A stretch of 64,000 nucleotides of DNA, taken from Paraphysomonas bandaiensis (Eukaryota > Protista > Chrysophyceae). Positions 2,176-33,247 of the stretch are shown piece after piece (within the stretch, counting starts at the first letter, position 1; each line of letters opens with the position of its first letter). The notes beneath the pieces were generated by a model that made no database searches, had not been told where the DNA came from, and saw nothing but the letters and a program-made list of their open reading frames with translations. The translations under genes were made by a program, and so were the position numbers. The stretch lies in NCBI GenBank assembly GCA_965644295.1, contig CBFFRP010000202.1, positions 63,793-127,792 on the forward strand, in the 5' to 3' direction.

Positions 2176-3802
2176 ATGGCTTGTGCATCAGATATCTATC
2201 CATATATCTATAATTTCTTAGTGGTAATGTATACATATATATATATATATATCCTTATAATTCACATGTATATAGACTTCTGGTCATACAAAAACAGCAA
2301 AATTATTTCTTAAAGAAGCTAATATTACAATTGATGATAAAGTTTCAAAGATTAATTTATTAGATATGTTTAAAGATTATATAAAACCAACTGTATCAAA
2401 AGATTCTGATAGCAGCTCAGTTTCTGACTCAAACAGTGATTCTGATAGCTCAGACAGTGATAGCGATGAAGAGGTTGCAAAGCCTACTGCTGTTACTGCT
2501 GACTCCAGTTCGTCAGAGTCTGAATCCAGTGATTCTGACAGCTCGGACAGTGATAGCGATGAAGAGGTTGCAAAGCCTACTGCTGTTACTGCTGACTCCA
2601 GTTCGTCAGAGTCTGAATCCAGTGATTCTGACAGCTCGGACAGTGACAGCGACTCAGATAGCGATGAAGTTGTAGCAAAGCCTACTGCTGTTACTGCTGA
2701 CTCCAGTTCGTCAGAGTCTGAATCCAGTGATTCTGACAGCTCGGACAGTGATAGCGACGAAGAGGTTGCAAAGCCTACTGCTGTTACTGCTGACTCCAGT
2801 TCTTCAGAGTCTGAATCCAGTGATTCTGACAGCTCGGACAGTGATAGCGACGAAGAGGTTGCAAAGCCTACTGCTGTTACTGCTGACTCCAGTTCGTCAG
2901 AGTCTGAATCCGGTGATTCTGACAGCTCGGACAGTGACAGCGACTCAGATAGCGACGAAGAGGTTGCAAAGCCCGCTCCTGTTGCTGCTGACTCCAGTTC
3001 TTCAGAGTCTGAATCCAGTGATTCTGACAGCTCGGACAGTGATAGCGACTCAGATAGCGATGAAGGTGTACCACTCCAGGTATGTTGTTTCTCTGATTTA
3101 TGTATAGAATTTTACGGTGATTTCTAGCGAACCAAGCGTTCTCGTGAGAATGGAGAATCTGCAGATGGCGCGGCATCGAAGAAAATGAAAGTTGATTCTT
3201 CTTCCGAGTCTAGCTCTTCTGGTAGTGATGACAGCGACGATAGCGAAAGCAGTAGTGATGAGGAGTCTGACGATGAGGAAACTGTCGCGAGGAAACTGAA
3301 ACAGCGAGAGATGGAAAGAAAAGAAAAGGCCCGACAGGCTGCCGCCGCTGCTGCTGCATGGATGGAGGTAAGCCTTTTGCTCTATGCGTTAATACCAATA
3401 ATGCCTCGAATAGAAAGCGCCAACAAACAGTGGTTCAAAATCAGCACCTAATTCTGCTGCTAAATCTCCGGGTGTTCCTTTCAAGCGTGTGAATTCCGAA
3501 ATATGGGGCTCCCAAATTATAGCTGGCTTAGAAGATAATTCATGTATGTAAAATGCGCTTGACATTTCGCTTCTCATGTATAGCAGACGAGAAGGCGTTC
3601 GGAGATGATGGATACGGTGCTAAAGCGAGTAATGTATTAATGCAGGTGTGTAACTTTTTTATTTTGGAATGTGTTCGTTTATATACAATTGATGTAGGTG
3701 AGAGGAAAAGATTTTCGTCACGAGAAAACGAAGAAAAAGCGAGGATCTTATCGTGGTGGTTCAATAACTCTAAACTCAAATTCATTCAAGTATGAAGAAT
3801 AG
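2176..3802 (+). CDS. NOLC1: Nopp140/SRP40-like nucleolar phosphoprotein (multi-exon)
   Basis: N-terminal LisH-like segment (IYPYIYNFLV|TSGHTKTAKLFLKE) and a central S/D/E-rich repeat region. C-terminal SRP40_C motifs after splicing: PFKRV, DNSYEKAFGDDGYGAKASNVLMQVRGKDFRHEKTKKKRGSYRGGSI..NSFKYEE*. Confidence 0.92.
2435..3066 (+). repeat. Coding tandem repeat (~100-120 bp, ~6 copies) encoding EEVAKPTAVTADSSSSESESSDSDSSDSDSD
   Basis: Near-identical units differing mainly in the number of SD pairs. Confidence 0.9.
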
Positions 3803-4262: not shown

Positions 4263-7200
4263 TCATACCAAATCATTCTTATCTTCAGCGGAATTGTTCT
4301 CTGGCTCAAAGTCCTCGCACTGAACATCGGAATTGACTCGCGGTACTATACTAGATGTGATGTCATTATACGAGATACTACCAGTGCCGTGACAGTCTAG
4401 ATCATCAAATCTATGTTTGATAACCTGAAGCAGCTCTGGCCGCAAAGCGCCAATTCGTACAAGCATTAATATAATATATTCACTGCAATCCAGATAGCCG
4501 TCTGAATCATCTATACCTATGCGGTTGGCCATATCTAGCTCTTCTTCAGTTAAAAAACTGTTAACTTTGGAAGAAAGCTCCGCAGCTTCTCCCAATGACA
4601 TTAACGCGTGAGCCATCATACCAAAAGTGACTGCCATAACTGAAAAAAATTGAAGTTAGATTTCACGCAATATACAACTCTCGGAATATACCTGCCATCC
4701 CAGAGCATGTATAAATACCAACAAGCACAAAGTACCAATCTGGGGAGTCATCTGGGATTTTAGAAAACCCACCAGTTGACATACTTGACCATGCAAAGTA
4801 TAACCCGTCCACAAATGACCATCCAATCGAAGAACAGCTCCACGCAACTCCAAAAACCGAATATAATACGAAAATAATATGAATTTTGTACTTGGGAACA
4901 TAGAATTTCAAGGCAGCCACAATGTCATCCGCATATCCCTCTGACTCTGCCGCAGCTTCCATTTCTTGTATTCTAGCTGCATCCGAATACCTATTCATGA
5001 ATTATAAGAAAATAGCATCAAAGAAATGCGATAACTTACCAGTTGGTTTTACTGTCAGCAAGTGAGCTTGCAATCACTGCCATTGCCAAACCGATCATAG
5101 CACTCCCTAAAAGCAAATGAATTGCCGAGTAAGCTTTCGCAATGGCATCTAAATCAAGCGACTGCCAATAAATCCCCTGCTAAATGTATCAAAACATATA
5201 CCGAGCATTAAAAAAATCGTACATATCCAACTGATACGCTTGTATAGAAGCCACGGGATAAGGTCATTCCAACATAAAATGAAAAAAACATCGTTCCAAC
5301 AAATAGCCACAGCAACCTGCAGTGCACATCGCAATATTAGAGTAATTTAGGTACCGGGATTAAATACTTGCCACAAGAAAAAAGACTGCGCATATGGACT
5401 CAGTAGTGTATAGTATATTTTCATACATAATATTGACAAAGGCCCCCCATCAGATATCGATGACTCTCTTTGAATTAAGAGTTCCTTGGCCTGATGACGT
5501 TAAAAAAATAGAACACACAGTGGAAAATAGAACCTTAAATATTTTGGAAATATGACGATCGCTTACGATAGGGGTATCTACTGAAACTTGATTACTCTTC
5601 GGAATAGGACCTATAAATAAAATTACACCTCCACCACAATTAATAAAATAGCAGTACCGTACCATTTTCCAAACCAGATTCATTATCGGATAGCGTGGAC
5701 GGGGCTCGAACTTCATCATAATCTTTGTCGTCTACTTTAAAAACAAAATTCATGGTAATTCTTATACTGCTCACAACTGAAATACTTATACCTGATTCTA
5801 CATCCTCCCTCTCATAGCAATCTTCATAATTTTCAAGTTGAAGATCATCATCATCGAAATCTGATTTCTTTGTCTCGCATTTTTCCATTTCACTGCTTCC
5901 ACATTGTTCTTTCCTTCCAATGTCACTAGAAGTGCTAACATCGCACACTGGGAGAATCTGCCCTGGATGCTGAGGTGGTGCGAACTCGAGCTCTGCAGTA
6001 GCCTTATCTGGTGTTGATGCTCCAGGGTGCGGAGCCACTTGCTTAGATATTTTAATATCGCCTAATACCGGTAGCTCTAATACAGACTTTCTGCATTTTG
6101 CATTGCTCTCTGTAGACTTGCTTCGATTGCGGCGCACAACTACAGATCCATCTTTATACATGGAAACAGTGAATGAACAATATACCTATGTCACCATACG
6201 ATATTCTATCGCTGTTTTCGCGATCCAGTTCCTTGAACTTTTCTCTAAACTCTTTGATTAAAGTCGGTTCTACTGAACCGATGCGAACAGCAGTGAGAAT
6301 TATAAACTCCTTGACATCTTATACACAACGTTATTAAACCATGAATTACTATTGTCTTCACCCACCTATAGTTCCGTCGCCATCATCAATGTCAAACATT
6401 TTCATAAAGTTAATCTCAGCGGGAGTTATGTCAGCAACAATTTTATCGTATATGGCTTCATCCTCAGGGTTTTCTAAGAAGAAACTCATGAACAGACCTA
6501 TAAACACAATTATCGTCGAAGCAATAAATGCGGACTAACTACCAATAGCAATCACAGTTAACGGAACACCAGTGGTAGTGTACAGAGCACAAAGCGCAAA
6601 ATTCCACGTGTTTGACGTATCTGGAATATGTCGATATCCGGCACCAGATAAAGTTGACAGTGTGAAATCTGCAGCTACAGCTACTGACCACCCGTCGATG
6701 TATAAAGTTACAACAACACCAAGGAGTGCCCATATAACAAATAATATAATAATTTTCACTTTCGGAAAATACAAGTTCACGGCAGCCACAATATCATCAA
6801 ATATGCCCTCTGTTTCAGCAGCTTTAGCTATTTCTTCCTGCTTCATCACTTCTAACAGCCAACTGCCCTTGCTAGCAGATAATTCTTTAGCAATATAAAT
6901 CACAGGTATTCCAGTAAACATAACACCAACAGCGTTGTGATAAATAGAAAATAATTTACTCCATATATCGCTATCGTCATATGTAATTGGTGGTTGCCAT
7001 CCTATCGACCATCCAACATTAACACTCTGATAGAAACCAATCGCCCACCCGAATCCATCATATAGAGAGTAGAAAGCGGTTCCTATAATAATCCATAGCG
7101 CACTGTATGCATATATATGTTATATTACATGTATATAAGTGTGTATGTATGTGTATATATAAGTGTATGTATGTAACATGTATGTATATATGTATGTATA

Positions 7201-7404
7201 TTCAGACTGTTATGAACTCATATGTTTAATAGTTCTTTTATTCTATACTTACCATGCGATAATAGGAGCATAACTCACAGGTATATGTATGGAATTCTGT
7301 GATTCACGTGCTGCTTGTTGTAATTCTAATATTTCAGCTGCATTAACTTTAATTGATGATACAGCCCCCTTACGACGGGATTTTAAGGGTCTTTGATGTG
7401 TCAT
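4263..7404 (-). CDS. Tandem (double) TPK/two-pore K+-channel-like protein A: 8 TM, 4 pore loops, 2 EF-hand pairs, ~840 aa
   Basis: Manual splicing (about 12 exons, one GC-AG intron) gives one ORF from MTHQRPLK. It contains P1 GFYQSVNVGWSIGW, P2 DFTLSTLSGAGY, EF DDGDGTIDVKEFIILTAVRIG, an acidic linker, P3 GFYTSVSVGYGIYW, P4 GLYFAWSSMSTGGF and EF DDSDGYLDCSEYIILMLVRIG. Confidence 0.85.
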
Positions 7405-8543
7405 GATATGTATTAAATGAATAAGTACATGTGAATGAATGATTAATGGGGTGTGTATGTGTGTGTTAAGTATGTATATGTGTGTTAAGTATGTATGTGT
7501 GTGTTAGTATATAGAGAGTTATGTGTAGAGAGGTACATATATATATGAGTGTATACGTAGTGGGAAGTGACGTTGAATAGATCCCTTTTATATCGTACAG
7601 TACATACATAGGTACAAATGGGAAGTATAATCCCACTAGTATATAAGTGCGATTGTCTACTAGTATGTCCTGTACATGTTGATCAAAATGATGTATATAA
7701 GTACACATACACAAGTACATATAGCCGTTCAATACTTTCAACTTTCTAGAACTACGTATGTATAAAACGTATATGAAAAGTTGAAGAACTTTCTCCTATT
7801 CTGTATTTTATGGTAATACAGCGTATTCTAAATCAGTCGTTTCACATACTATACCCTGTGAGAGAGTTGTACATACATAAGTACACTATACAAGTACACA
7901 CCATACATATCCAGTACTAGTATACTACGACTTTTTACACTATACAAGTACATACCATTTATAGCACTATGTATACATATATCTACCCATACACATCTCC
8001 ATAAGTACAAAACCATATATACAAGTACACATCATATACATATACAAGTACACACCAGATATACATGTACATGTAGAGTACATCTCCAGTACATCTCTAT
8101 ACACAGAGTTGTATATATATACATACATCTCCAGCATCTCTCTATATATACACATACATCCCACGTCAGTTCACATCTTACATACAACTCTCACTCATAT
8201 ATCTCTTACTTCATACTATTGAATCAATCCAATCATTCTTCCAATCAAACATTCAAATCATACTCATATGATTCAATTAAATCAGTTCATAATATCTAAC
8301 TAACACATACATACACATACATATACATACATACACACAGTATGCTTCTAATATCACACTATTAACACACATACACACATATACACACACATACACACAT
8401 ACACACATATATACTCTAATTTACATATAAATAATAAGGGTTTTCTAACTTTTTATTATCATAAATACTCATTTTAGTATCATATTGTAGAATGTTTGTA
8501 ATAGTCATTCATTTCATTCATTAGATCGATTTGTATTATAAAC
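7405..8543. promoter_or_regulatory. Putative bidirectional promoter region shared by the two channel genes
   Basis: 1.14-kb non-coding gap between divergent ATGs. Low-complexity sequence flips from GT/TATG-rich (left) to CA/CATA-rich (right). Confidence 0.55.
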
Positions 8544-11500
8544 ATGGTAAGAAAACATTGTAAAAGATTACAAATGAGACGTTTACCAACATATGATCTT
8601 GAATGTATTCCACCATCACAAATTTTAGAATGGGAAAATGAAAATAAAAGAAAAATTAAAGTTGAAGATTTACTCAATTATATACCTCTAGTGGCATGGT
8701 AAGATGATGTCTATGGTATATGTATTATATAGAAACTAATAGAATACTACAGGGTATTTTGGATGTTTTTTGGTACATGGTTCTATGCAGTACATGATGG
8801 TTTTGGCTGGCCACTTGGTTTGTATATGTCTGTGAATATTGGATGGGCACTTGGTTTTGACATTCCGTTCACTGGTGACCACTACGGTAGTCAGATGAGC
8901 AACCTTTTCTCTCTCATCCATACTTCGATCGGTGTGATATTTGTCGGTGTGGCGGTCATATACATAGCGAATGTTCTTACCCAGACAAAAGATAGCTGGA
9001 TGGTTGAGATACTACGCAAGAAAGAGATGGAACGAGCTGCTGCCACAGATGGGGTGTGGGACGATATCATAGCCACAGCGCGTCTGTATGGACCGAAATA
9101 CAAGATCTTTTTCTTATTCTTCATTTGGATCATATTTGGTGTGGTTTGGGGTATAGTCACTGTACCAGGTTGGGGTTTCTTGTACTCCTTGGACTATACG
9201 TTGTCCACTCTGTCCGGCGGTGGATATGTAACATTACCTGCTGATGCACCAGATTGGCAATATGTTGTTTCTGCCCTCTACGCGACCACTGGTATACCCT
9301 TAATGGCTATATCTCTGGGTATGCTTCCTGTTGAACACTCTTTTTCTCTGTATTGTGATATTGATTTCGTAGGCCTGCTTGTCACATTATGCATGGACAA
9401 CCCGGACGATAGTGCCATATTCTCCAAAATAGTAGCAGACGTCACCCAGGAAGAGATAGATTTTATGAATATATTCGGAATAGATGGTAGGATAGTGTCT
9501 TGTGCAAGTCTAGAATAATATGTGCTCACGTTGTTTATGTGCTATAATTTTTCTGTCGTTATTGCTGTCTTATCTGAATACTGCGTGTAGATGGTGACGG
9601 CAGCGTGGACAACCGTGAGTTTATTATTCTTACTGTGGTTCGTATTGGAGCTGCCCCACCCGACCTGATCGTGCAAATCAACCAGCGCTTTCAAGAGCTG
9701 GACCGCAAGAGGCAGAACAAGTTACTCTACGATGACTTAATTTACAAGAGACGGAGAAAGGCTCCTACCTTGAGAAGCGTAGTACGAAGCAATGAATTCA
9801 GCAAGCTCATTATATCGAAGCGTTTATCGGAGGAACACAACCCAAACTCTAAGCGCAAGCGGAGGAGGCATTATTCTATAAGGCGGGAATACGAGATAGT
9901 CGAAGCGTCTCCATCATTGACTTCGAAGGAGGTGCCTGTCAAGGTTATGGTACTCTTTTATTCGTAATTAATTTTGACTAAACACTGTTACCTCAGAAAA
10001 AACGCGGATTTTCGCCAGTGCCATTTGAAAATAACAATAGCCTTGAGAGGGATTTATACGATATGTCTCTCAACTGTAGTGCTGATGAACCCGAATCTCA
10101 ACAGAGTTGTGGAAGTTATCGTGAAGGTACTAACTACCAGTCACCTTCACGCGTTAATGATATCGAGAGTGGGGAAGTCGGAGTCGACCTTGACGAAAGT
10201 GAAGTAAAAGACAGCGATATGGAATCGGATAGAGTGAGCTCAACGCGTCGCCGTGTATCTCGCATCGATTCAGAAGGGAGTGCTAGAAGCGCTACTATGA
10301 TGCTTGTAGCCAATGCTGCAATGGGATCGATGAGGCGCATTAAGCAAGAGGACGATATGGAATTCAACTCAAAAATCTCCGCTAAGATGTTAAATAAGCT
10401 GAGAAGCGTTGATGAGTCTTCTGGGCACCACATTCATCTCCCACCAGTACTTTCTGCGTTGTATTTGGCTATCGTGGATCCGTACTGCAAAGCTTTCATG
10501 GCATGGTATCAGACTCTAATTTCTGGGTTTTTGACGTAACCAATGGGACGCAGGGTTATTTGGATAGTTGCAGGAAGTGTTTTCTACTCAATTCATGACA
10601 ATGTGTCATTTATGATGGGATTCCACACCAGTGTATCTGTCGGATATGGTACGCCTATTGCTGACGAGCACATTATTGTCTTAAATATGTATTGCCATGG
10701 CCACAGGTATATTTTGGACAGAAATGCATTTTAACCCGGCCCTGAAGGCATTTACAATATGCTATCTTCTCATTGGAAGTACGGCCATCGGTGGGGCTAT
10801 GGCGGCTTTTGCAAGAGCACTTTCGGACACGAAAAGCAATTGGTGAGCACTGCTAATACTTGTATTACACACGGGAATAATTGCTTGTACCAGGTATGTT
10901 GACGCGCTTCGTAAAAAACAGCTGGCAGCTGCAGAAGACACGGAAGGGTACTGGGATGACATCGTAGCAATCGCTGCAATATACTGGCCAAAAGTGAAGA
11001 TACATGCGATATTCTTTGTTCTTGCTGCGTGTGGAACGCTCTGGAGCTGCCTAACTTTCGACTGGACGTTTATTGATGGTTTGTATTTTGCTCTCTCAGC
11101 TATGTCCGCTGGTGGGTTGGTAGAACTTCCGGACGGGAGTGAGGATTGGAAATATGTTTTAGTCAGTCTATATATTTGTATTGGTGTTCCTGTAATGGCA
11201 ATTGCTTTCGGGCTCTTTGCCCATCAAATTACAAGCTTTGGGGCATCCGATTGTTTGGAAGAAAAGCTTAACGCCAGATATACTGAAGAAGAAGTTGAAA
11301 TGATGAAGTCCTTTGAAATAGACGGTATGTTTAGCATGGATATTTAAAGGTCGTAGTTATTGATTCATGCAGATGGAGATGGGTCCCTGGATGCCAGGGA
11401 GTTCGTTATATTAATACTTGTTAGAATCGGAGCTCTGAATCCGGAGCTGATTAAAGTTATCAATGACCGATTTAGGGACTTTGATACTGAAGGAAAGGGA

Positions 11501-11647
11501 TTTGTGTCTTACGCCGCTCTGAAGAGCAGTAGGGTAGGTGTTGATACTGCAAGAGATATGGTCCACTCGAATATTCAAGGCAGTCGGCGACCGACCATGC
11601 GATTACTGGGGTTTGGAACAGCGAAAATTGGCACATTACATTCCTAG
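8544..11647 (+). CDS. Tandem (double) TPK/two-pore K+-channel-like protein B: 8 TM, 4 pore loops, 2 EF-hand pairs, ~880 aa
   Basis: Nine exons joined by in-frame GT-AG introns (e.g. 8699-8752, 9319-9372, 9487-9590, 9944-9996, 10506-10553, 10649-10706). Motifs: P1 GLYMSVNIGWALGF, P2 DYTLSTLSGGGY, EF DDGDGSVDNREFIILTVVRIG, P3 GFHTSVSVGYGIFW, P4 GLYFALSAMSAGGL, EF DDGDGSLDAREFVILILVRIG. Confidence 0.88.
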
Positions 11648-13040: not shown

Positions 13041-14819
13041 TTACTTCTTGTTTTTCATTTGGCGTCTAACAGAATGAAACACAGCACCAAACACGAGGAC
13101 GGTCCCCAAGTATGAGTATATTGACATCTTATGCCCAAATATAACAGACGACAAAACCATCGAGAGCATCTGACGTGTGGTCATAATCACAGTGAAGACA
13201 ATCGGTCCAAACTCTTTAATGGTATAGAAGATAAAGAACTGGCCCGTTGCGCTAGTAACTGCAGTTACAATGTTATAAAGAACAGCTGTGGGATTGACCA
13301 TCAAAAATTCGAAAACCGTAAATATTTCCCCACTAAATATCAACGCGGCAGATGTCAATAGAACTGCCCAACTATTTACCCAAAACATCATGTGATATTG
13401 ATCAATCTTCCCATAGTTCTTGTAAAGTCGACTTTGCCATTGCGAAGTGAAGGAGTCGCTACAAACATAGGTAATCAAGAGGAGTACACCGGCAATGCTG
13501 GTCTCTGTATCGTTGCTTTGAGTAGCATTCTTTGACATTGAAAAAACTAACACGCCAGAAGTTATGGCAAGAGCTTCCACATACTCAATGAACGTATAAG
13601 TGACTCCTCTCAATAGCATTCCCATTAGCATCACTGGAATCACTTTCGTACTTTTAAAAATATTTTGCAATGGAAAACTGACATAATGCAAAGATGCATA
13701 TTGAGCCCATGAGGATGATGTATTTGATATAGCACAAGGTAAGAATGCATAGTATGGTGCAGTACAATATATTGTCCCATGTACAGTCCTTATAACTAGG
13801 AAAGATATAACTATCGCCAAAAAACGATTCGAAAACACACAAAAAGAGGCAGAAGGAAACATGCCGTCTGGTGAGGAGGCAGTTGGAGTGAATTTAGTGG
13901 TCATAATGAGTTCTTGCATCATACCCCATGTTAAATATGATACTTGTAGACCTAAAAATAGTATATATGATATTCATGTAGTACATGAAATAGTGTATGA
14001 GATGTTGCATATGATATTCATGTACGTTATATAGTGTATGAGATGTTGCATATGATATTTAACGTGATGTTGCATACGATATTCATGTACGTGAAGTAGT
14101 GTATTAGATGTTCCATATGATATTCATGTACGAGATATAGTATGTGAGATGTTGCATACGATATTCATGTACGTGAAGTAGTGCATGAGATGTTGTATAT
14201 GATACTCATGTACGAGATATAGTATGTGAGATGTTGTATATGATACTCATGTACGAGATATAGTATGTGAGATGTTGCATACGATATTCATGTACGTGAA
14301 GTAGTGCATGAGATGTTGTATATGATACTCATGTACGAGATATAGTATGTGAGATGTTGCATACGATATTCATGTACGTGAAGTAGTGCATGAGATGTTG
14401 TATATGATACTCATGTACGAGATATAGTATGTGAGATGTTGTATATGATACTCATGTACGAGATATAGTATGTGAGATGTTGCATACGATATTCATGTAC
14501 GTGAAGTAGTGCATGAGATGTTGTATATGATACTCATGTACGAGATATAGTATATGAGATGTTGTATATGATGTATACTATGATACTATATACGATAGTT
14601 CACACTGTGTTTCATATGATGTTACATACCTAAAAAACAATACAAGCCTTTATATATAAGTGCCATAGTATCTTTATTTGATTGTTCATTTGATTTCTTT
14701 CTACCTTCTTCAATAAGTGAAATTGATTCAGTTTCATTGTCTGATATATTGGAGTGTTTCGGTTTGGATTGAGAGACACTCATTGGTTTCATATCGTTCA
14801 TACGAGGCATGTTTGACAT
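13041..14819 (-). CDS. SLC35B2: PAPS transporter 1 / UAA-family nucleotide-sugar transporter (2 exons, intron 13952-14629)
   Basis: YCFL|GLQVSYLTWGMMQE, VFSNRFLA, SNTSSSWAQYASLHYVSFPLQNIFKSTKVIPVMLMG, DSFTSQWQSRLY, SATGQFFIFYTIKEFGPIVFTVIMTTRQ. Confidence 0.92.
13965..14572. repeat. Intronic minisatellite, 41-bp unit in two alternating variants (~14-15 copies)
   Basis: GAGATGTTGCATACGATATTCATGTACGTGAAGTAGTGCAT and GAGATGTTGTATATGATACTCATGTACGAGATATAGTATGT, each 41 bp, interleaved. Confidence 0.9.
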
Positions 14820-19373: not shown

Positions 19374-20795
19374 TCACGCAATGAATGCTTGGAGTGTGGC
19401 TCGGATACCGTTCTCGCATATTTGGTCGTAACAAGCTTGTATTTCTTCCACAACTTTAACATTTTCCACAATATTTCCAAACACCGTACGGTCAGCGAGA
19501 AACGCAGACGCATGGCCATTGGCATTTGATACAACAGATCGCAATTTCTCCGCTTCAGGATCGTCAAGAGGTGTTGAGTTGTCGCTATCACATGCAATAG
19601 TCAAGAACCGCATATAACTGGCAACCACGGCTGATACGCACTTCGAAGGCTGTGAGGATTCACATAACTCGCTGAGTGTCGGCACGATAAAACCAGGAAT
19701 TTTCGCCGAGCCATCTTTGCATAGGCGTAGAATTTGATCTTCAATGGCTGGATTCGCAAAACGATCGACTAGTGTATCCTGGTATGATCTAATGTCTACC
19801 CCTTCCACTGGGAGTAGAGTTTTTTCAACTTCGCTGAAGAAGGCACGCAAGTAAGATTGAAATAAAGGGTCCGACGACACTTCATCAACACGAGAGAACC
19901 CTGCAAGGTGTCCGGCATATCCCACAGCCATATGTCCACCATTGAGTAATCTAACTTTAATCTTCTCATACGGCTTGACGGACTCAACGAGTTGTACCCC
20001 CACCAGAGGCCAGTCGGGTTTGTCATTGCAATAGTTGTCCTCAATAACCCACTGCCGATAGGATTCCGATGTCACTGGGACACGATCCTCAGAGCGAAGC
20101 TCTTCTCGAACGTATGTCATCTCTGAGTCTGTCGGTGCAGGGGTAATTCGGTCTACCATACTGTTTGGGAAGGCCACATTCGCTTCTATCCACGAAACTA
20201 ATGACGGATATGCCAGCTGACAAAACTCGAGTAGTAGAGATCTCGTCAAGTCGCCATTGCCTTGAATGTTATCACACGACTGTATAGTGAATGGTTTTAC
20301 GGAACTATCACTTTCTTGCATTTTCTGTCGCAAGCTCAACCCTCTGGCCAGGTATCCGTACAGTGTCCTGGGTTTCGAATGATTGCTAATATCATTCTGA
20401 ATGTTTACATTAGATGTGTCTAAGCGCTTGGTAGAAGGGTCAAAAAAGTATCCGGCCTCTGTGACTGTAATAGTAACTAGCTTAACCTCTGGACAAACAA
20501 GCTTCTTGAATACATCCTCTGGATTGAGGTAACCATTCAAGATCTCTATAATGCTTTGTACTTGTTTGACTTTGACACCACTATTATCACGTTCAATCAA
20601 TGTATATTTGCAATCTTGTGCACGTAAACTCTCAAAAACATAGCTATCATTAGGAAGCATGCATACTCCACATATACCCCACTCTAGACACCCTTGTGAG
20701 AGCAAATCCTGGATATACAAAGCCTCATGAGCCCTATGAAATCTGCCAACACCAAAATGAACTATTCCTGTCTTTACCTCAGTGCGATTAAACAT
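19374..20795 (-). CDS. M2DH: Mannitol 2-dehydrogenase (long-chain polyol dehydrogenase family), 473 aa, intronless
   Basis: IVHFGVGRFHRAH, TITVTEAGY, SCDNIQGNG, FPNSMVDRITP, QWVIED, YEKIKVRLLNGGH, RFANPAIEDQILRL. Confidence 0.95.
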   Translation of the reverse strand: MFNRTEVKTGIVHFGVGRFHRAHEALYIQDLLSQGCLEWGICGVCMLPNDSYVFESLRAQDCKYTLIERDNSGVKVKQVQSIIEILNGYLNPEDVFKKLVCPEVKLVTITVTEAGYFFDPSTKRLDTSNVNIQNDISNHSKPRTLYGYLARGLSLRQKMQESDSSVKPFTIQSCDNIQGNGDLTRSLLLEFCQLAYPSLVSWIEANVAFPNSMVDRITPAPTDSEMTYVREELRSEDRVPVTSESYRQWVIEDNYCNDKPDWPLVGVQLVESVKPYEKIKVRLLNGGHMAVGYAGHLAGFSRVDEVSSDPLFQSYLRAFFSEVEKTLLPVEGVDIRSYQDTLVDRFANPAIEDQILRLCKDGSAKIPGFIVPTLSELCESSQPSKCVSAVVASYMRFLTIACDSDNSTPLDDPEAEKLRSVVSNANGHASAFLADRTVFGNIVENVKVVEEIQACYDQICENGIRATLQAFIA

Positions 20796-21617: not shown

Positions 21618-24600
21618 ATGAAGGGTATCAAACACGAGAATACTCTTCATAGTTTAGACGGTGATCGTACACGAGAGATTGTAGGGGATCTTCTACATAA
21701 AGTATGCTATATATATATAGAATGATAATATAATTAACTCTATGTATGTGTTTTTTTTATAGTTAACTAAAAGTAATGAGAGCAGAAAGCGTTTATCTCA
21801 TGAAGTTTCATACTTAACTAATAAAGTAGATGAGTTATCATCAGCATTATTATTAAGTAAAATGAGAATTGGAGAATTAGAAGCATGTAATGAATGTCTT
21901 ACTATGAAGTTAAATGATTTTTCTTCAACTACTACAACTGAAGATCTTCGTCTGAGAGTAATACATAACAACGTATCCTAATTGAAGTAAAATAGTTTTC
22001 AGGTAAAACGCGAGTTGAGTGAAAAACACGACATTCGAATGCTTTTGGATACTTCACTCCGTCAAGTTGAGTCACTTTCGAAGGCTAATATAGATTTACA
22101 AAACAAATTAAATGAACAGGTTTGTTTGCCGATTGGATGCATATTTATGATTTCAGCGATTATAGGTCATCCCCAAACGTCAAGCCTCCAGTGATGGCCT
22201 CAAGAGTGCAAAGATTGATGAGTTAAAGACAGCACTAGATAATTTGAAATGGGGATTCAAATTACGGTAAGTTTTCTATTTCACTATTTGAAGTAGCTAA
22301 GTTGAGTCGTCCAGAGAAAGGCAACTTCAGTCAGAGCTTGGAGAGCACAAGAAATTGATAGAAGCGATGAGACTTTCTCAACAACGAACTAGAAACGTCG
22401 TTAGGTAAAATCCACTTATATGCGCCGCTCGGTTATACCTCATGCATGTGTGTGCACATGCTATTAGGAACATCGCCGAGGTGGCTTGTAACGTTATAGA
22501 TGAAAGCGATACAACTACCAATGGTGCTAAATCTAGCCAGACACACGATATGCTACCCTCCTATCCTGATGCTGCCTTGGTGAATACTCCAATGCTTGAA
22601 TCAGCCTCAGGACAGGCCCTCGATTTTTCTTCTCCTCTAACGATGCCGCAATATGAAGAAGAGGATGATGGAAGTGGGGACGACGGAGACCATGTGATGG
22701 ATGCTGCAAGCGCCGATCATAAGCTAGCGTTTTTGGAGAACGAGTTGCGGGAAGCTCGTGAGGAGTCACATACTAGTAAAGTACATAACGATCATTTGCG
22801 TGCTCAGGTGGAGGATCTATTAGCTGTGATAGGTGAAATGGAATCTTCACTGCGTTGTGGCCTGGATAGTTATATTTGCATGGATGACAGCGAGTTTAGC
22901 GAAGCTTTTGAGGAATCACTAAAATCACTAGATGAAAGCTTGACGAGCAGTCACCTTGATCGACTCCAGCGTACATTTGCTGATGAGGTTGGCGTGCTAG
23001 TTCGATGGTTGGATAAATTGCATTGTCAGAAACCTGCCGTATCCGCCGTAGAAGGTTCTAATGTGGATAGATCCGACTCCACTTTCCCGGCCACTGAAAC
23101 TCCTTTACTGGAAGACAAAGAAAGTGAGTTGCAGCAACACCTACAGAGATTGACTAATGAATGGGAATCACGCTTTAAATCTTTGCAATGTGAAAAAGAT
23201 GTAGAAATACAGAATTTCAAAGAATTACTACGTGTATCAGAATCAAAAGTTGAAGATAACGAAAGCCGTATAAGTGAGCTAGAAGCACAACTATACACTC
23301 TGAGAAATCAGAATGAACAAATGCGTGAATCTGAAATTAAGCAAAGACATGAGCACCAACAGGAACTTGCTGTGTTAAAGAGTGGGGCCGAGCAAGAGGC
23401 TCAGGAGGCCGCGGAGCTGAAGGAAGGTGAATTGTTGCGACAGATTCAAGAGCTAACAGAGGCCCTACGTGAGTCTGACTCAATAGCTGAGGCCCAACGA
23501 GAGTCTTATGAATCTCGCGAGCGGGATTTGATGGATGAGATCAACGACCTGTCTGATCGCGTCAGTGAGGCTAATGGTGCACTTCAAGAGATAGATATGT
23601 TGAGGGGCACAGTGTCCGCGCTGCAGAAAGATAAGGATTCGATGACCCAAGAGCTCGAAAATGTATGGGCTGAATTTGAAGAATCGATGAGGGAAGCAGA
23701 CAACTTGAAGGAAGAGATTAAGGAATTAAAGGGTGTTGGTGTGAGTACGTCAGAGAAATCAAGCCACTTAGAAGCTGAAAGGACTGAGCTAATTAACCGT
23801 CTAGCCGCACTGCAGGAAGAAAAAAGTTGTTCAGATGCGAAGGAGCAACGTTTGATTGACCAACTTGATAGCTTGCAATTCCGATATGATGAGCTTCAGT
23901 TAGCAGCTACCAGTAACGAAGACCAGGTATCAGCAGAGCAGCAATTACGTAAGGAGCTTGATTCTTCGCGTGCGTCCGAGCAAAAGCTTGTCGCCGACCT
24001 TCAAGCGTTGACTGAAGAAAGAGATAATCTAGTTACAGTTATCAAGGACTTAGAGTCGACTTTAGCTGAGCTTAGGAGCCAATGCGATGATTACGAAAAA
24101 AATATGGAGGAGTTACAATCCAAAGACGAACTTATTGCCCGATGTGAACAATTTGAATCTGATATACGTGATTTAGAGCGTTCTATAGAATCTAAAAGCA
24201 CTGAATTGGAACAGGAACGTGCTGTAGTAGCTGATCAATCTATTGTAGTGAACGATCTTCGCAACCTCCAGCATGACTTAGAAGAGAAAATTTATATTCT
24301 CGAATCCGAGTTGCAACTGAAAGAGAAAGACATGAGGGACAGCATTGCAACCGTAGAAGCTCTACAGGGATCAGTTGACAAATTGTCTTCCTGTAACCGG
24401 GAGCTAGAAGGGAACAACGATGAATTGCGTTCACGGTACATGGAATTAGAATCTCGACATATAGCTCTTCAGAGTGAAGTTGAAAACATCACTTATGCAA
24501 AGGCGAATGAGTTGGATTCACTGATGGCACGAAATGATGAATTGTCTGCTGATGTTTCGGAATTACGAAGTACTTTGCATCAAAAGAAAGAGGAAATGAA

Positions 24601-27600
24601 GGTAAATCTCAAAGCCATTGAAGAGCTACAAGATAGTGTTGAAAACTTGATTTCACGCGAGAAGTACCTGTCAGATAATAACAGTAACCTTCAAGCGAAT
24701 TGTCAGCATTTGGAGCGTCGTATTGACGAACTCAATCTTGCAATAACATCTAAAGAAGATGAAATGTCGACTATTCTTGCTCGAGAGGAATCACTGCAGT
24801 CCGAAAAGGAAGTGCTACAGTCTCGTTGCTCAGACTTGGAATCTCTTGTTGTAGAAATGCAGTCTAGTGGCAGACGCGATGACTCCGATGTCAGTTGTGG
24901 TAACGGTGATGAAACTACGATTTCCACCCTGTCAGAACGCTGTTCTGACCTAGAGTCGATCGTAATCGAATTACAGAAATTAATTGCGGATAAAACGGAA
25001 GAAGTTCAGGTTGCGAAAGCTAGTGAGAATGAGTTAAAAATGGAATTGGAAGAGATGTCTGTTCAATGTGAAGAGTACCTCCGTGTTATTGATAGTCTGC
25101 AGGAAAGCAATAAAACTGAGCAGGTAAATTCTATTAGAGAAGTGTCGTTGTCAGAGAGTGCTTTTGGACCTGCATCTTTGTTGGAAATGGCCGAAAATGC
25201 ATCATTAGAAGTTGAAATGGCGGATATGAGAAGTCGGCTGGATGATGTTAATGCTGCGCTGGAGGATGCCCTGTCGTCAAAAATGGAGTTAGAGGAGCGT
25301 TGCGAAACCCTACAGAGCAGTGTGGACTCTCTTCAACAAAGGCTTGTGTCTGCTGAGACCTTATCGAGAGAATCTACCACTCCGTCTAGGGGTAAAGGTC
25401 GCAATCCCGCTCTCACGGCTCTGGAAGGTCGTGTGGCCCAACTTTTGGAAGATGTCCATAATGCTTCTGCCCGTGAATCGGAGATGCGAGATGAGCTACA
25501 TCAACTGCGAACAACTAATAAGAAATTAGAAGAGTCTAAGGACTCCTTAGAGCTCAGAGTAGCGGAGTTACAAGACTTGGTTGCTGAGATGTCGGAGGCG
25601 CTACAAGTGGTTAAGCTACAGTTCGCTGAGGGCGAGGAGAAGATTAGGAATTTAGAGAATAGTCTACGACAAACGACAACACAACTGAATGATTCACAAG
25701 CTGACCTATTGGTGGAACGTGATAGAAGTGAAGCCTTGGAGTCAAGAGTTAATGAGTTGGAAGAAAAAGGACTGAAAAATATTGCTGAGTTAAAGAAGCA
25801 GCAGAAAGTCTTTGATTCTAGTGATAGTAGATGCACTAACGGGCCCCAACAACCGAAGGCTGGGGCGAATTGGTGGTCTATTGATGGAGATAGCGATACA
25901 GAAATGGATGCTTATTCCAATGGTTCTACCCCTCCTCGACCGCGTAGTCATGATAATTCTGTTCCAGATTCACCTCATGGTGGAAAAGGTGTGGAGTTAA
26001 AACGCCTCACTTCTGAGATATCAAGTCTCAAAACAACCATTCAAGAGCTGACGGCAGCTTGCGCAGAGAAAGATTCTGTACTCGATATGTACTCAGACAT
26101 GAACAAATCACATGAATCGGAGCTTGAGCAATTGAGAAATAAACTTCAATGTGCTTATGATGAGCACTCTTCTTGTTCAGTAAAGATTAAAGATCTGGAG
26201 TCTGCCCTACATGCCGCGAAAGATAGTGAACTTCAATCAACAACCCAAAATGCTATGTTGTTGGATAGTAAATTTGATTTGGAGCGAGCGAAGGGAATAT
26301 TAGAGGATGAAGTTAAACTCTTACGAGCAACCATGCAGACGGAAGAAAATTGGAAATATACACTTGAGGAACAACAGCGTCGCATTTCCGAATTAGAAAG
26401 CAAGTTGCAGGGGTGTATGGACGAGGCAGATATCTCGGAATTAAAAAGTAAATATAGTAAGTTAGAAGTTGTCAATAAGAGTGCCTCAGATAGTATTGCT
26501 GAGCTTCAAGTCGCTCTAGAGGAAGCTCATTCCCAAAAATCAATGGCATTTCAACGGGAAAATGAATTGCGTGATGAATTGTCACAGTTACGAACGGAAA
26601 TGTCTGGTCTGCTAGCGGACAAGCAGGTTCTCTCGGATACAAGTGAGTCTTTACGAAAAGAAATTGAATCCTTGACACAGAGAATTGAAGAATTAGAAGG
26701 TTTGCTAAGCTCTGAAAAGGAGGCGTTTGAGCAGGAGGCAGTTAGATGGAACAGCGATTTAGCTGCAGCGCAAGAGAATATCGAGACTTCGGAGGAAGCT
26801 AATGCACGACTATCGGAGTTACTTGAAGAGGCCGAGTCAGAATCTGAAGTACAAATATCACAATTAAAATCTGAGCTTTCGTCGGCATTAGTTCAATGTA
26901 AAGAATTACAAATAAGTGTCGATGAGTTGTCTGGACGGTTAGATGCGTTAAAAGCTGAGAAGGAGTTATTGTTTACGGAGAAAGAGAGTCTTCGATACTC
27001 TCTGGAGGAAGCTGTTGCGGCTCACAGCACTCAAGCAAGTGAAAGAGTACTGGCTACTGAAGAATCGAATAGGAAACTGAAGATGGAAGTCGAAGATATT
27101 CGTAGCCAGCTTCAGATTGCGGAGGATGCATTGGTAGCCAGCGAAGAGAAGGCAACCCGGTTGCAATTAGACCTTTCTGCTTCGTCTGATATGTGTCGAA
27201 AAATTGAAGCGGAGCTAGCGAAAGAATCTTCCCTGAAAGAAGCTTTACAAGACCACTTTACATCTACGTTAGAGAAAGTTAATGTTATTAATTCACAATT
27301 AGAGGCCAAACTCGAGCGGTATAATTCCAATATATTGGGGCTGGAAATGGAGATTCGGTCTTTACAAGAGTCTCTGGATTCTTCCCGAACACAATGTGAT
27401 TCTGCAGAGGAAGAGCTAATGGAGGCCCGTCAAGAGAGTAAGGAGCTACAAATCGCGTTGGATGATGCTCATACACAACTTGAGATCGCTCGTGATTCTC
27501 TTTCAGCACAAGGTGCGTCAGCAAAAAGCGAGAAGGATGCTTTGGAATCTACAATGAAGGAAAATTCTGATCTTCGGCTACAACTCTCGGAGCTTGAATT

Positions 27601-30600
27601 AGTACTCGATGTATCAAAACAGAAGGTAGTTGGCTTGGAGCATGAACTGGCGACACGATTGAAACAGTTCGCGAGTACTGATGCGGAGCTTAACGACCAT
27701 CTTCGTTGTATCCTTCAAAAAGTAGACCGATTAGAGCAAGATATATGCTCACTGACAATGGAGAAACAAGTGCTGGAGAACTCTTTACAATCCTCACGAC
27801 ACGAGTGTGATCGTGCCGAGGAAGAGCTTGTTGAGTGCTGTCACAAAGTGAAGGACCTTCAAGAGCAAGTCGACACCCTTTCTGCGGACCTTAGAAATAA
27901 GGAGTCCGACGTACATCGCCTCAATGAGTGGGTGCTAGAACTTGAATCGAATGCAGATCGTATCGTCCAGCTTGAAACTGACCGAAAAGAAATATGCGAA
28001 GCACTTGAACAATCTGAAAGCGATAAATCGTCTTTGGAGTCGAAGGTACACGCTCTGAACGAAGAGTTAAGAGAGTCGAAGTGCCAGTGTGAGCTATTCG
28101 AAAGTGATGTTATTCGTCTTGAAGCTTTGGTTTGTGACATAACCAGTGAGAAGAGTGCGTTGGCTTCCAAATTGTGTGAGATCAACGATAAACTTACCAA
28201 TTCTGAAAATAAATGTTTATCTCTTGTCATCGAGTTAGAAGCGGCAAATATATCCGGTGACGGCAGTGTAAACCACTCTGCAGCGGAACAGGAGAGATTG
28301 ACAGAGGATAATGTGGAATTATCTGTAAAAATTAAAGAATTGGAGAGTGAAAATGTGACATTATTGGAGTCGCAGCGAAATTTGCGTTCAGAAATAAGTG
28401 ATCTCACTGCTGAAAATGAATCCTTAAAACTCTCGCAACACGACGATGATTCAAAGACGATTACTTCTGCTCTGGAGCGACTACAGGTGGAGCTAGACCG
28501 TAAATCCAAGGACCTTGCGGATGTGTATGCTGAGATGGAGCAGTTACAGGAATATCTTGAGGTTGTGGAGTCAGAGAAATCTGACCTTACAATTCGGTGC
28601 AAAGATCTGGAGAAGCAACTATCAGATACTAGAGATGAGCTGGAGGAAGCTGTACTTTCCGCGGCTAGTGACAAACATGATGCCGAGAAGTATAGAGCAG
28701 AAGTAGATGAGATGACACAGAAGCTCTTGTGTTCGGAGAAGGAATTGGCAACTGCGCAGCTGCAATTACAAAAAGCTCTTTCGTGTGGCAGTGAAGAGGA
28801 AAAGACTTCCTACGACCCTCCTGGAGCTGTATCCCCTGTCCCTGGTACAGAAGATGATTTGCAAGGTGTTTTGGCATTTGTGCGAAAACTAAATGGTTAT
28901 ATGTACGATGCTGCTTCCGTTCTCGTACCCGACATTGTCAATGATGATGACCCAGAATATTACTCTATTCCTATGGGTACGGCGTTTGATGTACACAAAA
29001 CGATATCCAATCGCAGTGTACATGCTTTGCAAGTGGCCACGAAACAGTGTAGCGATCTGAAAAGAGAACTGCTTCAAGCTCGACATGATTTAGAAGAAGC
29101 AGAGCAGCAGGCAGCAGACACAAATGAAATGTTACAGTTCCAAAAGAAAAAGATAGATAATCTTAAAGCTAGCAAAAAGAAGCTATTGGAGGAAATCGAT
29201 AGTCTTCAAGCACAAACGAGTCAAATAGACTCTGCTCAATTTGGTACTGATTCATCACGTCAACAAGTGCTTACTCACGGGAACCCCATGGAGTCAGAAT
29301 TATTGCCAAAAGAAGAAGCTGCCCAGAATGGCTCTATAAACAAGGTCACCTCACAGTTTGATAACGTGGCCGATGATCAAGAGTCCCACTCATTGTCCGA
29401 AATAGTTCAAAAACTCCAAAATGATAACGAATCCCTGAATATAAGTACAGTAAAATCAGCTGTGGAGAAATTCCAGAGTGAGAACGAGTACTTGAAGGAG
29501 CAGATGACTATTTTATCATCAGAGAACGAGTCATTGAGAGAGCAGAGTATAGCTTCTGAACCGTTGATCAGTGAGTCCGATCTCGGTGTCTTGAAGTCGG
29601 CTGTGGAGAAATTCCAGAGTGAGAACGAGTACTTGAAGGAGCAGATGAGTATTTTATCGTCCGAGAACGAGTCATTGAGAGAGCAGAGTATAGCTTCTGA
29701 ACCGTTGATCAGTGAGTCCGATCTCGGTGTCTTGAAGTCGGCTGTGGAGAAGTTCCAGAGTGAGAACGAGTACTTGAAGGAGCAGATGAGTATTTTATCG
29801 TCCGAGAACGAGTCATTGAGAGAGCAGAGTATAGCTTCTGAACCGTTGATCAGTGAGTCCGATCTTGGTGTCTTGAAGTCGGCTGTGGAGAAGTTCCAGA
29901 GTGAGAACGAGTACTTGAAGGAGCAGATGAGTATTTTATCGTCCGAGAACGAGTCATTGAGAGAGCAGAGTATAGCTTCTGAACCGTTGATCAATGAGTC
30001 CGATCTTGGTGTCTTGAAGTCGGCTGTGGAGAAGTTCCAGAGTGAGAACGAGTACTTGAAGGAGCAGATGAGTATTTTATCGTCCGAGAACGAGTCATTG
30101 AGAGAGCAGAGTATAGCTTCTGAACCGTTGATCAGTGAGTCCGATCTTGGTGTCTTGAAGTCGGCTGTGGAGAAGTTCCAGAGTGAGAACGAGTACTTGA
30201 AGGAGCAGATGAGTATTTTATCGTCCGAGAACGAGTCATTGAGAGAGCAGAGTATAGCTTCTGAACCGTTGATCAGTGAGTCCGATCTTGGTGTCTTGAA
30301 GTCGGCTGTGGAGAAGTTCCAGAGTGAGAACGAGTACTTGAAGGAGCAGATGAGTATTTTATCGTCCGAGAACGAGTCATTGAGAGAGCAGAGTATAGCT
30401 TCTGAACCGTTGATCAGTGAGTCCGATCTCGGTGTCTTGAAGTCGGCTGTGGAGAAGTTCCAGAGTGAGAACGAGTACTTGAAGGAGCAGATGAGTATTT
30501 TATCGTCCGAGAACGAGTCATTGAGAGAGCAGAGTATAGCTTCTGAACCGTTGATCAGTGAGTCCGATCTCGGTGTCTTGAAGTCGGCTGTGGAGAAGTT

Positions 30601-33247
30601 CCAGAGTGAGAACGAGTACTTGAAGGAGCAGATGAGTATTTTATCGTCCGAGAACGAGTCATTGAGAGAGCAGAGTATAGCTTCTGAACCGTTGATCAGT
30701 GAGTCCGATCTCGGTGTCTTGAAGTCGGCTGTGGAGAAGTTCCAGAGTGAGAACGAGTACTTGAAGGAGCAGATGAGTATTTTATCGTCCGAGAACGAGT
30801 CATTGAGAGAGCAGAGTATAGCTTCTGAACCGTTGATCAGTGAGTCCGATCTCGGTGTCTTGAAGTCGGCTGTGGAGAAGTTCCAGAGTGAGAACGAGTA
30901 CTTGAAGGAGCAGATGAGTATTTTATCGTCCGAGAACGAGTCATTGAGAGAGCAGAGTATAGCTTCTGAACCGTTGATCAGTGAGTCCGATCTCGGTGTC
31001 TTGAAGTCGGCTGTGGAGAAGTTCCAGAGTGAGAACGAGTACTTGAAGGAGCAGATGAGTATTTTATCGTCCGAGAACGAGTCATTGAGAGAGCAGAGTA
31101 TAGCTTCTGAACCGTTGATCAGTGAGTCCGATCTCGGTGTCTTGAAGTCGGCTGTGGAGAAATTCCAGAGTGAGAACGAGTACTTGAAGGAGCAGATGAG
31201 TATTTTATCGTCCGAGAACGAGTCATTGAGAGAGCAGAGTATAGCTTCTGAACCGTTGATCAGTGAGTCCGATCTTGGTGTCTTGAAGTCGGCTGTGGAG
31301 AAGTTCCAGAGTGAGAACGAGTACTTGAAGGAGCAGATGAGTATTTTATCGTCCGAGAACGAGTCATTGAGAGAGCAGAGTATAGCTTCTGAACCGTTGA
31401 TCAGTGAGTCCGATCTCGGTGTCTTGAAGTCGGCTGTGGAGAAGTTCCAGAGTGAGAACGAGTACTTGAAGGAGCAGATGAGTGTTTTATCGTCAGAAGT
31501 CGATCGGATGAGGAATAATAGGTTTGGGAATGAGGATCTTATTAGCGCAGAGGATTTGAGTGCACTGAATTCATCTTTGAAAAACATACGGAATGAGAAG
31601 GAGCTGTTAGAGGAGGAAGCAGAAGTTCTTCGTGCAGAGAATGATTTACTTAACACACGAGTTGATGAAATTGAAATTTCTCGAGCCGAATTGAGTCGGG
31701 AAGTGCACCGTCTCAAGGAGTCTCTCTCCGAACTTAACCATTCTAGTGATGAAGTTGAGAATTTGGAGATGAGAATTAGTAAGTTACAGCAGCAACTGAG
31801 TGCTTCGAAGAAGCACTCTGCGTCACAGGAAGCCCGTTTGTATGAACTTGAAGCCATGTGCGCGGATTTGAGACATACGAATATGGATCAAGCTGGTACG
31901 GTAGATACACTACAGAAGCAAAACGCTGAGTATGAAGCTACTATTAAAGATCTTTCTCAAACTATTCGCTATCATGAAGCCAAAATTGTTGACCTCGAAG
32001 GAGAACTTGAAGTTGCTACCGGACAGACTTTTGGTTCGGAAATTAAAGATATTAAGTTGCGAGACTTAGAGAGTAAAATTCAGAAACTGACAGGTGTGTA
32101 CGTGTTTTGGACATTTATTTTTTAGTTTATATACCCTAGTGGAGCGAGATAACCTCGAGGCGGAATTGAATAACAAATCTGAGAGTCTGAAAGCACTGTT
32201 TGATAAAGAAAAAGAATCTCTTGAAACAGAAAACTCTAATTTACAGCGAAAAGTGGAGGTAGGTGTGATGTTTGTATTGTTTTATGATATCAGCGATTCA
32301 CAATGAATCCACAGGAGTTTGAGGAAGAGAGGGCGGGATACCGTGAAGCTGTTAGTACTGCCTACGAGGAGGCGAGTCGAATGATCAGTGCTGCCGATAC
32401 AAAGCAAGACAGCAGTTCATCCGGATCGATCATTGCCAATGTAATGGGCTCCACTAAACGGCAGGCGGAACAGATATCTAGCTTGAAGAGGCAGGTGAAG
32501 GAGCTGAAGCATCTTGAGCAATTGCGCCCCCAGCTATTGGATCTTCAACAGCAGTTGAGTGCAGCGAATCGAAATACGGAAACGCAAAAAGAAATCGCTG
32601 ACGAGGAGATAGCGACACTCACCGACCACAACCAACAGTTAGCTGCGGCGGTTATAGAGTACAAGCAATCTACCGAAAGACTAGAATCTGAAGTCAGTGA
32701 GGCACGAGCCCTGGTAGTGCAGCTCACTGATCGTGTCAAGCATCTAGAGAGTGAAGGCAGACAGCTCGTGATCGATCTCGAAGATGCCCGGTACGAGACT
32801 CAACAAATACGAGAGGCATCGGCTGACCCAGTGATTGTCAACGAGCTGGAAGCTAAAGTTCAAGAGTTGGAAAGTAAGATTTTCTTACCTGCAGTACCTG
32901 TTGTAAATGATACTTGGTAGACGACAAGGGGTTTTGGCAGAGAAAGGCACAACATCTCTCTAAGGATATTGTTCGACTCCAGACCAAAGGAAAAGATATA
33001 TCCGAACTTAGTGAGGAGAACCTGTCGCTGAAGAAACGTGTAGAGGTTTGTGACAGGAGATTAATTTCATTTATGTACATTCAAAATAATATTATTGAAA
33101 TCATGTGTATGTAATTCCACTAAAACGTGTTTGCAGGAGCTTTTGGTCGAGAGAGATGCATTCAAATCTGCTCTAGAGCAGACAATAGACGAGTCGAATC
33201 CAGTAACCCCTGCTCGTAAAGGTATTTTTGGACGGAAGAAGAAGTAG
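21618..33247 (+). CDS. Giant coiled-coil protein (~3600 aa) of unknown function; several short exons flank one ~9.6-kb exon (22468-32093)
   Basis: 3227-aa ORF with continuous E/L/K/S-rich heptad patterning. GT-AG exons upstream (MKGIKHEN...) and downstream (...PARKGIFGRKKK*). No catalytic motif recognised. Confidence 0.85.
29453..31497 (+). repeat. Coding tandem repeat, 141 bp (47 aa) x ~14.5
   Basis: Unit KSAVEKFQSENEYLKEQMSILSSENESLREQSIASEPLISESDLGVL. Unit starts at 29453, 29594 ... 31427 (14 x 141 apart). Confidence 0.97.

Follow-up and report, generated by a model that had tools for sequence, protein, structure and literature searches.

A natural single-chain tandem of two K2P/TPK-type modules with four unlike pore loops in the flagellate Paraphysomonas

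K2P and TPK channels are dimers of 2P chains (PMC8619664, PMC13715775). The plant TPKs (AtTPK1) and the algal two-pore K+ channels are built from a 4TM/2P module (four transmembrane helices, two pore loops) with a C-terminal EF-hand pair, and have neither voltage sensor nor cap (PMC8619664, PMC13715775). Four pore loops are found in one polypeptide in the Trk/Ktr/HKT proteins (SKT), which are 8TM/4P, lack a sensor and form one central pore (PMC7067972), and in tetraKCNG, a single-chain four-repeat K+ channel with voltage sensors (PMC8835908). NaKTs is a cation channel of the non-selective kind, and its filter is non-canonical (PMC5052707). The proteins described here have the TPK module, the EF-hand pair and the lack of sensor and cap in common with TPKs. 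However, a TPK channel is a dimer in which each chain has one module and the filters read GYGD, whereas these proteins carry two modules per chain and have GYGD in no filter.

The window analysed is a stretch of 64,000 nucleotides from Paraphysomonas bandaiensis. It contains two intron-rich genes, A (4263-7404, reverse strand) and B (8544-11647, forward strand), which are read divergently, head to head, from either side of an AT-rich, simple-repeat spacer (7405-8182) that presumably holds a promoter region common to both. Splice models were made with GT/GC..AG sites set by coordinate, and most of the introns are 43-58 nt long with a lower G+C content than the exons. Gene B has nine exons, and removal of its introns (8699-8752, 9319-9372, 9487-9590, 9944-9996, 10506-10553, 10649-10706, 10843-10893 and 11325-11372) leaves 877 codons with no internal stop. 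Module 1 (aa 46-331; 8679-9748) runs M1-P1-M2, two amphipathic helices, M3-P2-M4 and an EF-hand pair. The linker (aa 332-559, 228 aa; 9749-10485) is mostly disordered, with predicted helices at its end; after it comes module 2 (aa 560-839; 10486-11530), which is again a 4TM/2P unit with an EF-hand pair. The intron at 9944-9996 (GT..AG, 53 nt) lies inside the linker and is in phase 0, as stated in the first-pass annotation of this DNA.

Gene B is one mRNA with one ORF. A profile-free search with its exon 2 as query retrieved full-length two-module proteins, in clusters that name their source as MMETSP1103, Paraphysomonas (taxid 36769), a sample that we take to be P. bandaiensis. One of these transcript-derived proteins, P0151, has 877 aa and differs from the gene B model by a single residue (M564I). 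The JGI transcript contig L026 aligns to the window at 97.7-100%; its alignment gaps coincide with introns 1-7 of gene B, and so it lacks both introns of the linker region, 9944-9996 and 10506-10553; its 5' end defines a transcribed leader (8183-8543, forward strand) that is a lower bound for the 5' UTR. Since P0151 and the spliced L026 cover both modules, there is one transcript across 9940-10560, as the first-pass annotation expected, and this B transcript does not end after the first EF-hand pair. L026 (2293-3238) retains the last intron, 11325-11372, which is spliced in the MMETSP protein; with this intron retained the protein would stop within EF1 of module 2 (783 aa), and the retention represents either incomplete splicing or a regulated isoform.

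The model of gene A has 12 exons and encodes 836 aa, in 836 codons with no internal stop. Module 1 (aa 44-328; 6144-7275) is followed by a linker of ~199 aa (aa 329-526; 5398-6143) spread over four exons, and by module 2 (aa 527-808; 4350-5397). Introns are placed, in reading order, at 7252-7103, 6542-6498, 6365-6318, 6185-6152 (or -6140, in the same frame), 5791-5735, 5662-5611, 5533-5491, 5371-5317 (GC-AG), 5222-5177, 5039-4991 and 4691-4640. No gene A transcript was found with exon queries, and the linker requires four introns (6185-6152 or -6140, 5791-5735, 5662-5611 and 5533-5491) plus the GC-AG intron 5371-5317; we therefore infer the joining of the two A modules from the gene model. The claim that in-frame splice junctions join the modules in both genes is thus borne out by transcripts for B, while for A the frame is open and the join probable from sequence. 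Four runs that are only guessed to be RNA contain 56-62% of the words of 4263-11647; gene B alone could account for 37% if spliced or 47% if unspliced, and A and B together for 67%, so that gene A is probably expressed.

A phase-2 intron occupies one alignment column, at the start of the M1 helix, in all four modules of the two genes, and within gene B both modules also have a phase-1 intron in EF1, as expected from internal gene duplication. At the start of filter 3 an intron falls in the same column in both genes, in phase 0 in A (5222-5177) and in phase 1 in B, a shift of one base. The two modules of one gene are 35-38% identical to each other, and a module of A is 46-48% identical to its counterpart in B. 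Both linkers are charged, as first described, and of about the 200 aa then given; they are also Ser-rich, and the A linker has no likeness to the B linker. An inter-pore signature had also been proposed; it is real, although the pattern as first written matches none of the four modules, since the Tyr is preceded by four residues rather than three, and the first Ala is not kept in B module 2. Of the 26 modules in the two-module clade 13 have its core, E/D-G-x2-DDI, against 0 of 50 single-module relatives.

Elsewhere in the window, a Ser/Asp-rich protein of repeated units is encoded just past the 3' end of gene A (2366-3451, forward). Other genes encode a UAA nucleotide-sugar transporter (13041-13922, reverse), a V-ATPase Ac45/VOA1-like subunit (40631-41461, reverse), a TauE/SafE exporter (58991-59908, forward) and, without introns, a mannitol dehydrogenase of 473 aa (19374-20795, reverse). 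A single open frame of 3227 aa (22442-32125, forward) has no convincing Pfam match, is overlapped by long antisense ORFs, and at its C-end has a weak coiled-coil-like match to ATG16. A frame of 542 aa (60738-62366, forward) resembles the gag/zinc-knuckle/protease part of a Copia-type retrotransposon.

The architecture, which the first-pass annotation proposed to look for in protist proteomes, is not confined to A and B. Ten loci in the genome (62.6 Mb) have a module of the first type followed ~2 kb on by one of the second type, and single-module copies are found on two contigs (C281 and C210). At four loci one frame without stops leads out of module 1 and across the linker as far as the start of module 2 (517 codons on C127, 594 on C374, 407 on C288 and 464 on C319), so that fusion there needs no splice inference; the chance of 400 stop-free codons is about 7e-13. 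Full-length transcript proteins exist for five more paralogues (C412, C363, C127, C288 and C407), and for these, as for B, one transcript encodes one chain. Two-module proteins are also found in P. imperforata and on Logan contigs, and metagenome DNA contigs (up to 305 kb) carry two-module genes without introns that encode 998-1054 aa. Three two-module genes are clustered on one 378-kb contig. Two near-identical two-module genes lie inverted, head to head, at C363:150000-160700, a pairing also seen in A and B and in two genes on L031. The genome has at least 63 pore-domain matches in all; on C146 and C386, pairs of Ion_trans_2 matches ~1.6 kb apart within frames of 1200-1400 aa belong to other tandem K+-type channels.

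Relatives with one module per chain, from a diatom (Seminavis, P0089) and another chrysophyte (Chlorochromonas, P0191), belong to the same family and represent the source of the module. In a quick tree of modules, with identical and partial rows left out and SH-aLRT as the only support measure, first modules form one clade (100) and second modules another (94); the two are sisters, and single-module proteins stand apart (97). Since first and second modules fall in separate clades, the duplication predates the split of these paralogues and species, and the order module 1 then module 2 is kept in every member of the clade. Two further two-module proteins, P0017 (on L029) and P0037 (on L030), lie outside the Paraphysomonas clade. 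The two modules of P0017 group together (SH-aLRT 100), which indicates a separate, younger and independent duplication in a second lineage; P0037 may represent a third.

Pfam Ion_trans_2 was matched in 56 of 69 family modules, and EF-hands were also matched, in agreement with the domain content first proposed. The module profile best matches TWIK-1 (E 2.5e-9, the best channel), THIK-1 and NaK-type pores, while its EF part matches calmodulin (E about 1e-8 to 1e-9). The best fold matches of a single-module model are TWIK-2 (Z 13.5) and, by Foldseek, TREK-2. Both fold and profile place the module nearest to NaK-type and K2P pores. Some helices escape detection by hydropathy alone, and the count of eight TM helices and four pore helices comes from the AlphaFold model of full-length P0151 (pLDDT 75.7 and pTM 0.72, despite about 200 disordered residues), in which pore helices and loops are modelled at high confidence and the linker is disordered at 353-512. 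There is no extracellular cap, the pore helix beginning four residues after the M1 helix. Nor is there an S1-S4 voltage sensor, for which the A and B sequences leave no room and the B model has no helices, so that the sensor-less 8TM/4P layout read from the sequence stands.

The same model predicts that the four pore domains of one chain surround one axis, making the chain an intramolecular pseudo-dimer around a single pore. From residue 42 to about 762 the model can be aligned to four-domain pores of one chain, over 334-378 residues, best to Nav1.7 (Z 17.6, 363 residues, 4.5 A), followed by NALCN (Z 16.4) and Cav1.2 (Z 15.0). K2P chains (THIK-1 and TASK-2) also span both modules of the model, which is, on our reading of the aligned ranges, as expected if the swapped M1 helix falls on the partner module. 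A complete asymmetric pore made by the monomer, as suggested earlier, is therefore what AlphaFold predicts from one chain, a setting that would favour the pairing of homologous halves regardless of what the protein does in vivo.

With the register set by alignment to NaKTs and TWIK-1, the residues at the TxGYG positions of B are ALGFD (8847-8861), GGGYV (9216-9230), GIFWT (10648-10720, without both glycines, its first codon split by intron 10649-10706) and AGGLV (11108-11122). Those of A are SIGWQ and GAGYR in module 1, and GIYWQ and TGGFS in module 2. None of the four filters is TxGYG in either gene, and the signature TxG(Y/F/L)G in both pore loops is absent. A 'VGYG' in module 2 was considered as a GYG filter and rejected, as it aligns with the end of the pore helix. 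Among 13 two-module proteins, loop 1 is mostly G-W (Gly in 11) and has lost the second Gly; loop 2 is always G-Y and lacks the Thr; loop 3 has Phe or Tyr in place of the first Gly in all 13; and loop 4 keeps T-G-G in 11 and the filter Gly in 13. Single-module relatives (n = 50) have S-I-G-W/F-G and T-G-G-L/H-x, and the young duplicate P0017 still has SIGWG in both first loops. By these alignments the filter asymmetry is fixed, module-specific and kept across the clade. With four unequal, non-TxGYG loops, a K+ filter of the canonical four-site kind is not possible. The pore had been called K+-type; its filters are not K+ signatures, the term fits the fold only, and K+ selectivity is a candidate property. 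The best profile match of pore 1 is NaKTs (5CBF, E 3.6e-8).

Each module does end in a C-terminal EF-hand pair, as noted earlier, although the loops are non-canonical. In most modules EF1 has D/E-3, D-5, G-6, D-9 and E-12 with a hydrophobic position 1, and Asp at loop position 1 is lacking in all 26. EF2 loops are variable and often degenerate, and B module 2 lacks the acid at position 12. The P0151 model has helix-loop-helix pairs here, with the EF1 loops just after M4. Putative Ca2+ binding by these loops, and regulation through them, are plausible.

Each module is a 4TM/2P unit with the pore fold of K+ channels, as in K2P and TPK channels, but the chain has two such units where those channels have one. 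Animal K2Ps (TWIK-1/2, TREK-2, TASK, THIK-1) are the best fold matches of the module, from which the family differs in lacking the cap and the M1 swap, in having EF-hands and non-canonical filters, and in being a natural single-chain tandem. Engineered K2P concatemers exist; no description of a natural 8TM/4P K2P/TPK tandem was found in the open-access literature. Trk/Ktr/HKT proteins likewise have four M-P-M repeats per chain and no sensor. However, the alignment of KtrB covers a single module (Z 10-10.8), the A/B family has EF-hand pairs and a long linker, and the Gly (or Ser) found in each of the four Trk/Ktr/HKT filters is replaced by Phe or Tyr in loop 3. TrkH (PF02386) is absent from the best 25 of 29 families listed for the 69 modules (E 0.1), and no Trk/Ktr chain is among the best 60 PDB profile matches. 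TrkH ancestry, considered because of T-G-G-F-S and one Atlas structure match (TM 0.45), was rejected, and judged by these tests the A/B family is not SKT-derived.

Nav, Cav and NALCN channels and tetraKCNG (CNGK) also have four unequal pore loops per chain, which for the A/B family surround one axis in the model only; they have 24 TM with S1-S4 sensors, whereas the A/B family has no sensors, and with a sequence identity of 8-10% the likeness is one of convergent geometry. NaKTs of Tsukamurella and NaK have the pore-helix end V-S/N-V-G in common with pore 1, but NaKTs is a bacterial 2TM homotetramer with Ca2+ in the filter and no EF-hands; the match being distant and the Ca2+ site lying in the filter, this likeness is an analogy. 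Fungal TOK channels have 8TM and two pore loops rather than four, and match one module weakly (E 1e-4). The first-pass annotation did not recognise the A/B family as a described channel class. No published description was found, but sensor-less single-chain 4P proteins are already known in Trk/Ktr/HKT, so that the novelty lies in a natural concatemer of K2P/TPK type with four different filters. The most apt description is that the family works as a covalent K2P/TPK heterodimer would, without counting as a standard member of those channels.

We regard it as probable, with considerable room for doubt, that one chain makes one asymmetric, voltage-independent and weakly selective cation pore, Ca2+-gated via the EF pairs below M4; conduction, selectivity and gating we infer. 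The two modules would come together as a pair of K2P/TPK subunits does in a dimer, but with neither cap nor M1 swap, and the linker would be a flexible tether. By fusion a heterodimer would have become permanent and its loops free to diverge one by one: the second filter Gly would have gone from loop 1 and the Thr from loop 2, loop 3 would have changed its first Gly to Phe or Tyr, and loop 4 would have retained T-G-G. As a canonical K+ filter is impossible, a voltage-independent, weakly selective cation channel is the most likely outcome, and cytosolic Ca2+ would probably gate it, acting on the EF1 loops that directly follow M4. At a guess by analogy with plant TPKs, the protein might sit in an endomembrane or vacuole.

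The Phe/Tyr-Trp of loop 3 tells against conduction, since it could close the pore. The same monomeric fold might then conduct barely or not at all, as a pseudo-channel acting as a Ca2+-sensing scaffold or regulator, a reading that gains from the absence of any canonical loop and from the first Gly of loop 3, kept in 50 of 50 single-module relatives and replaced in 13 of 13 two-module proteins. We nevertheless think it unlikely, although the strongest of the alternatives: the pore helices and loops are modelled with confidence, the filter changes are conserved and module-specific, unlike random decay, the filter Gly is present throughout in loops 2 and 4, and the family has expanded to ten loci and is expressed. 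Slightly less likely still is pairing between chains, whether as a two-pore dimer (M1:M1 with M2:M2, or swapped M1:M2') or as higher oligomers. A flexible linker of 200-600 aa would permit it, single-module relatives must dimerise between chains, and the AlphaFold model covers a monomer only; on the other hand, tethering keeps the partner module at a high local concentration, two Gly-less loops would meet in an M2:M2 pore, and the order of the modules is constant across the clade. The double-barrelled dimer is thus a less likely option than the monomeric pore.

A monomeric pore that is K+-selective through a non-canonical filter, like Trk/Ktr proteins with fewer sites, would suit the K2P/TPK ancestry and the KtrB alignment, and loop 4 of gene A, T-G-G-F-S, recalls what we take to be a TrkH loop. 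Trk-type K+ preference depends on one Gly in each of four loops, however, and with loop 3 lacking its Gly and no TrkH match among those best 25 Pfam families, we consider this reading improbable, slightly more so than pairing between chains. That two tandem single-module genes were wrongly joined, or that a precursor is cut in the linker, is very improbable, and for B separate genes are refuted at the RNA level. Gene A lacks a transcript and needs its four linker introns, and in P. imperforata one isoform (Transcript_5181) consists of two ORFs, of 856 and 307 aa, but that isoform has a full-length sister and breaks within module 2, and against separate genes stand the full-length transcript proteins of B and five paralogues, the stop-free frames over the linker and the homologues without introns.

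Returning to the monomeric, Ca2+-gated cation pore, we put forward more tentatively, at somewhat less than an even chance, that it represents an undescribed channel class: monomeric, sensor-less, derived from a fused K2P/TPK heterodimer, its four unequal, non-GYG loops giving a selectivity other than that for K+ (for Na+, for Ca2+, or none). If true, the family would provide, from 2P to 4P, a parallel to the origin of Nav and Cav channels, and one that has arisen at least twice within it. An empty slot in pore-loop architecture is filled by a covalent heterodimer made by evolution, where K2P and TPK channels are dimers. Single-module relatives, a recent duplicate with near-identical filters (P0017) and an old duplicate with four different filters coexist as a series, which makes testable the proposal, also made for Nav and Cav, that joining subunits in one chain allows pore loops to become unlike and to alter selectivity, in a natural protein in which each loop can be changed separately. 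The family further draws attention to ion signalling, unstudied so far, in this abundant bacterivorous flagellate of the sea.
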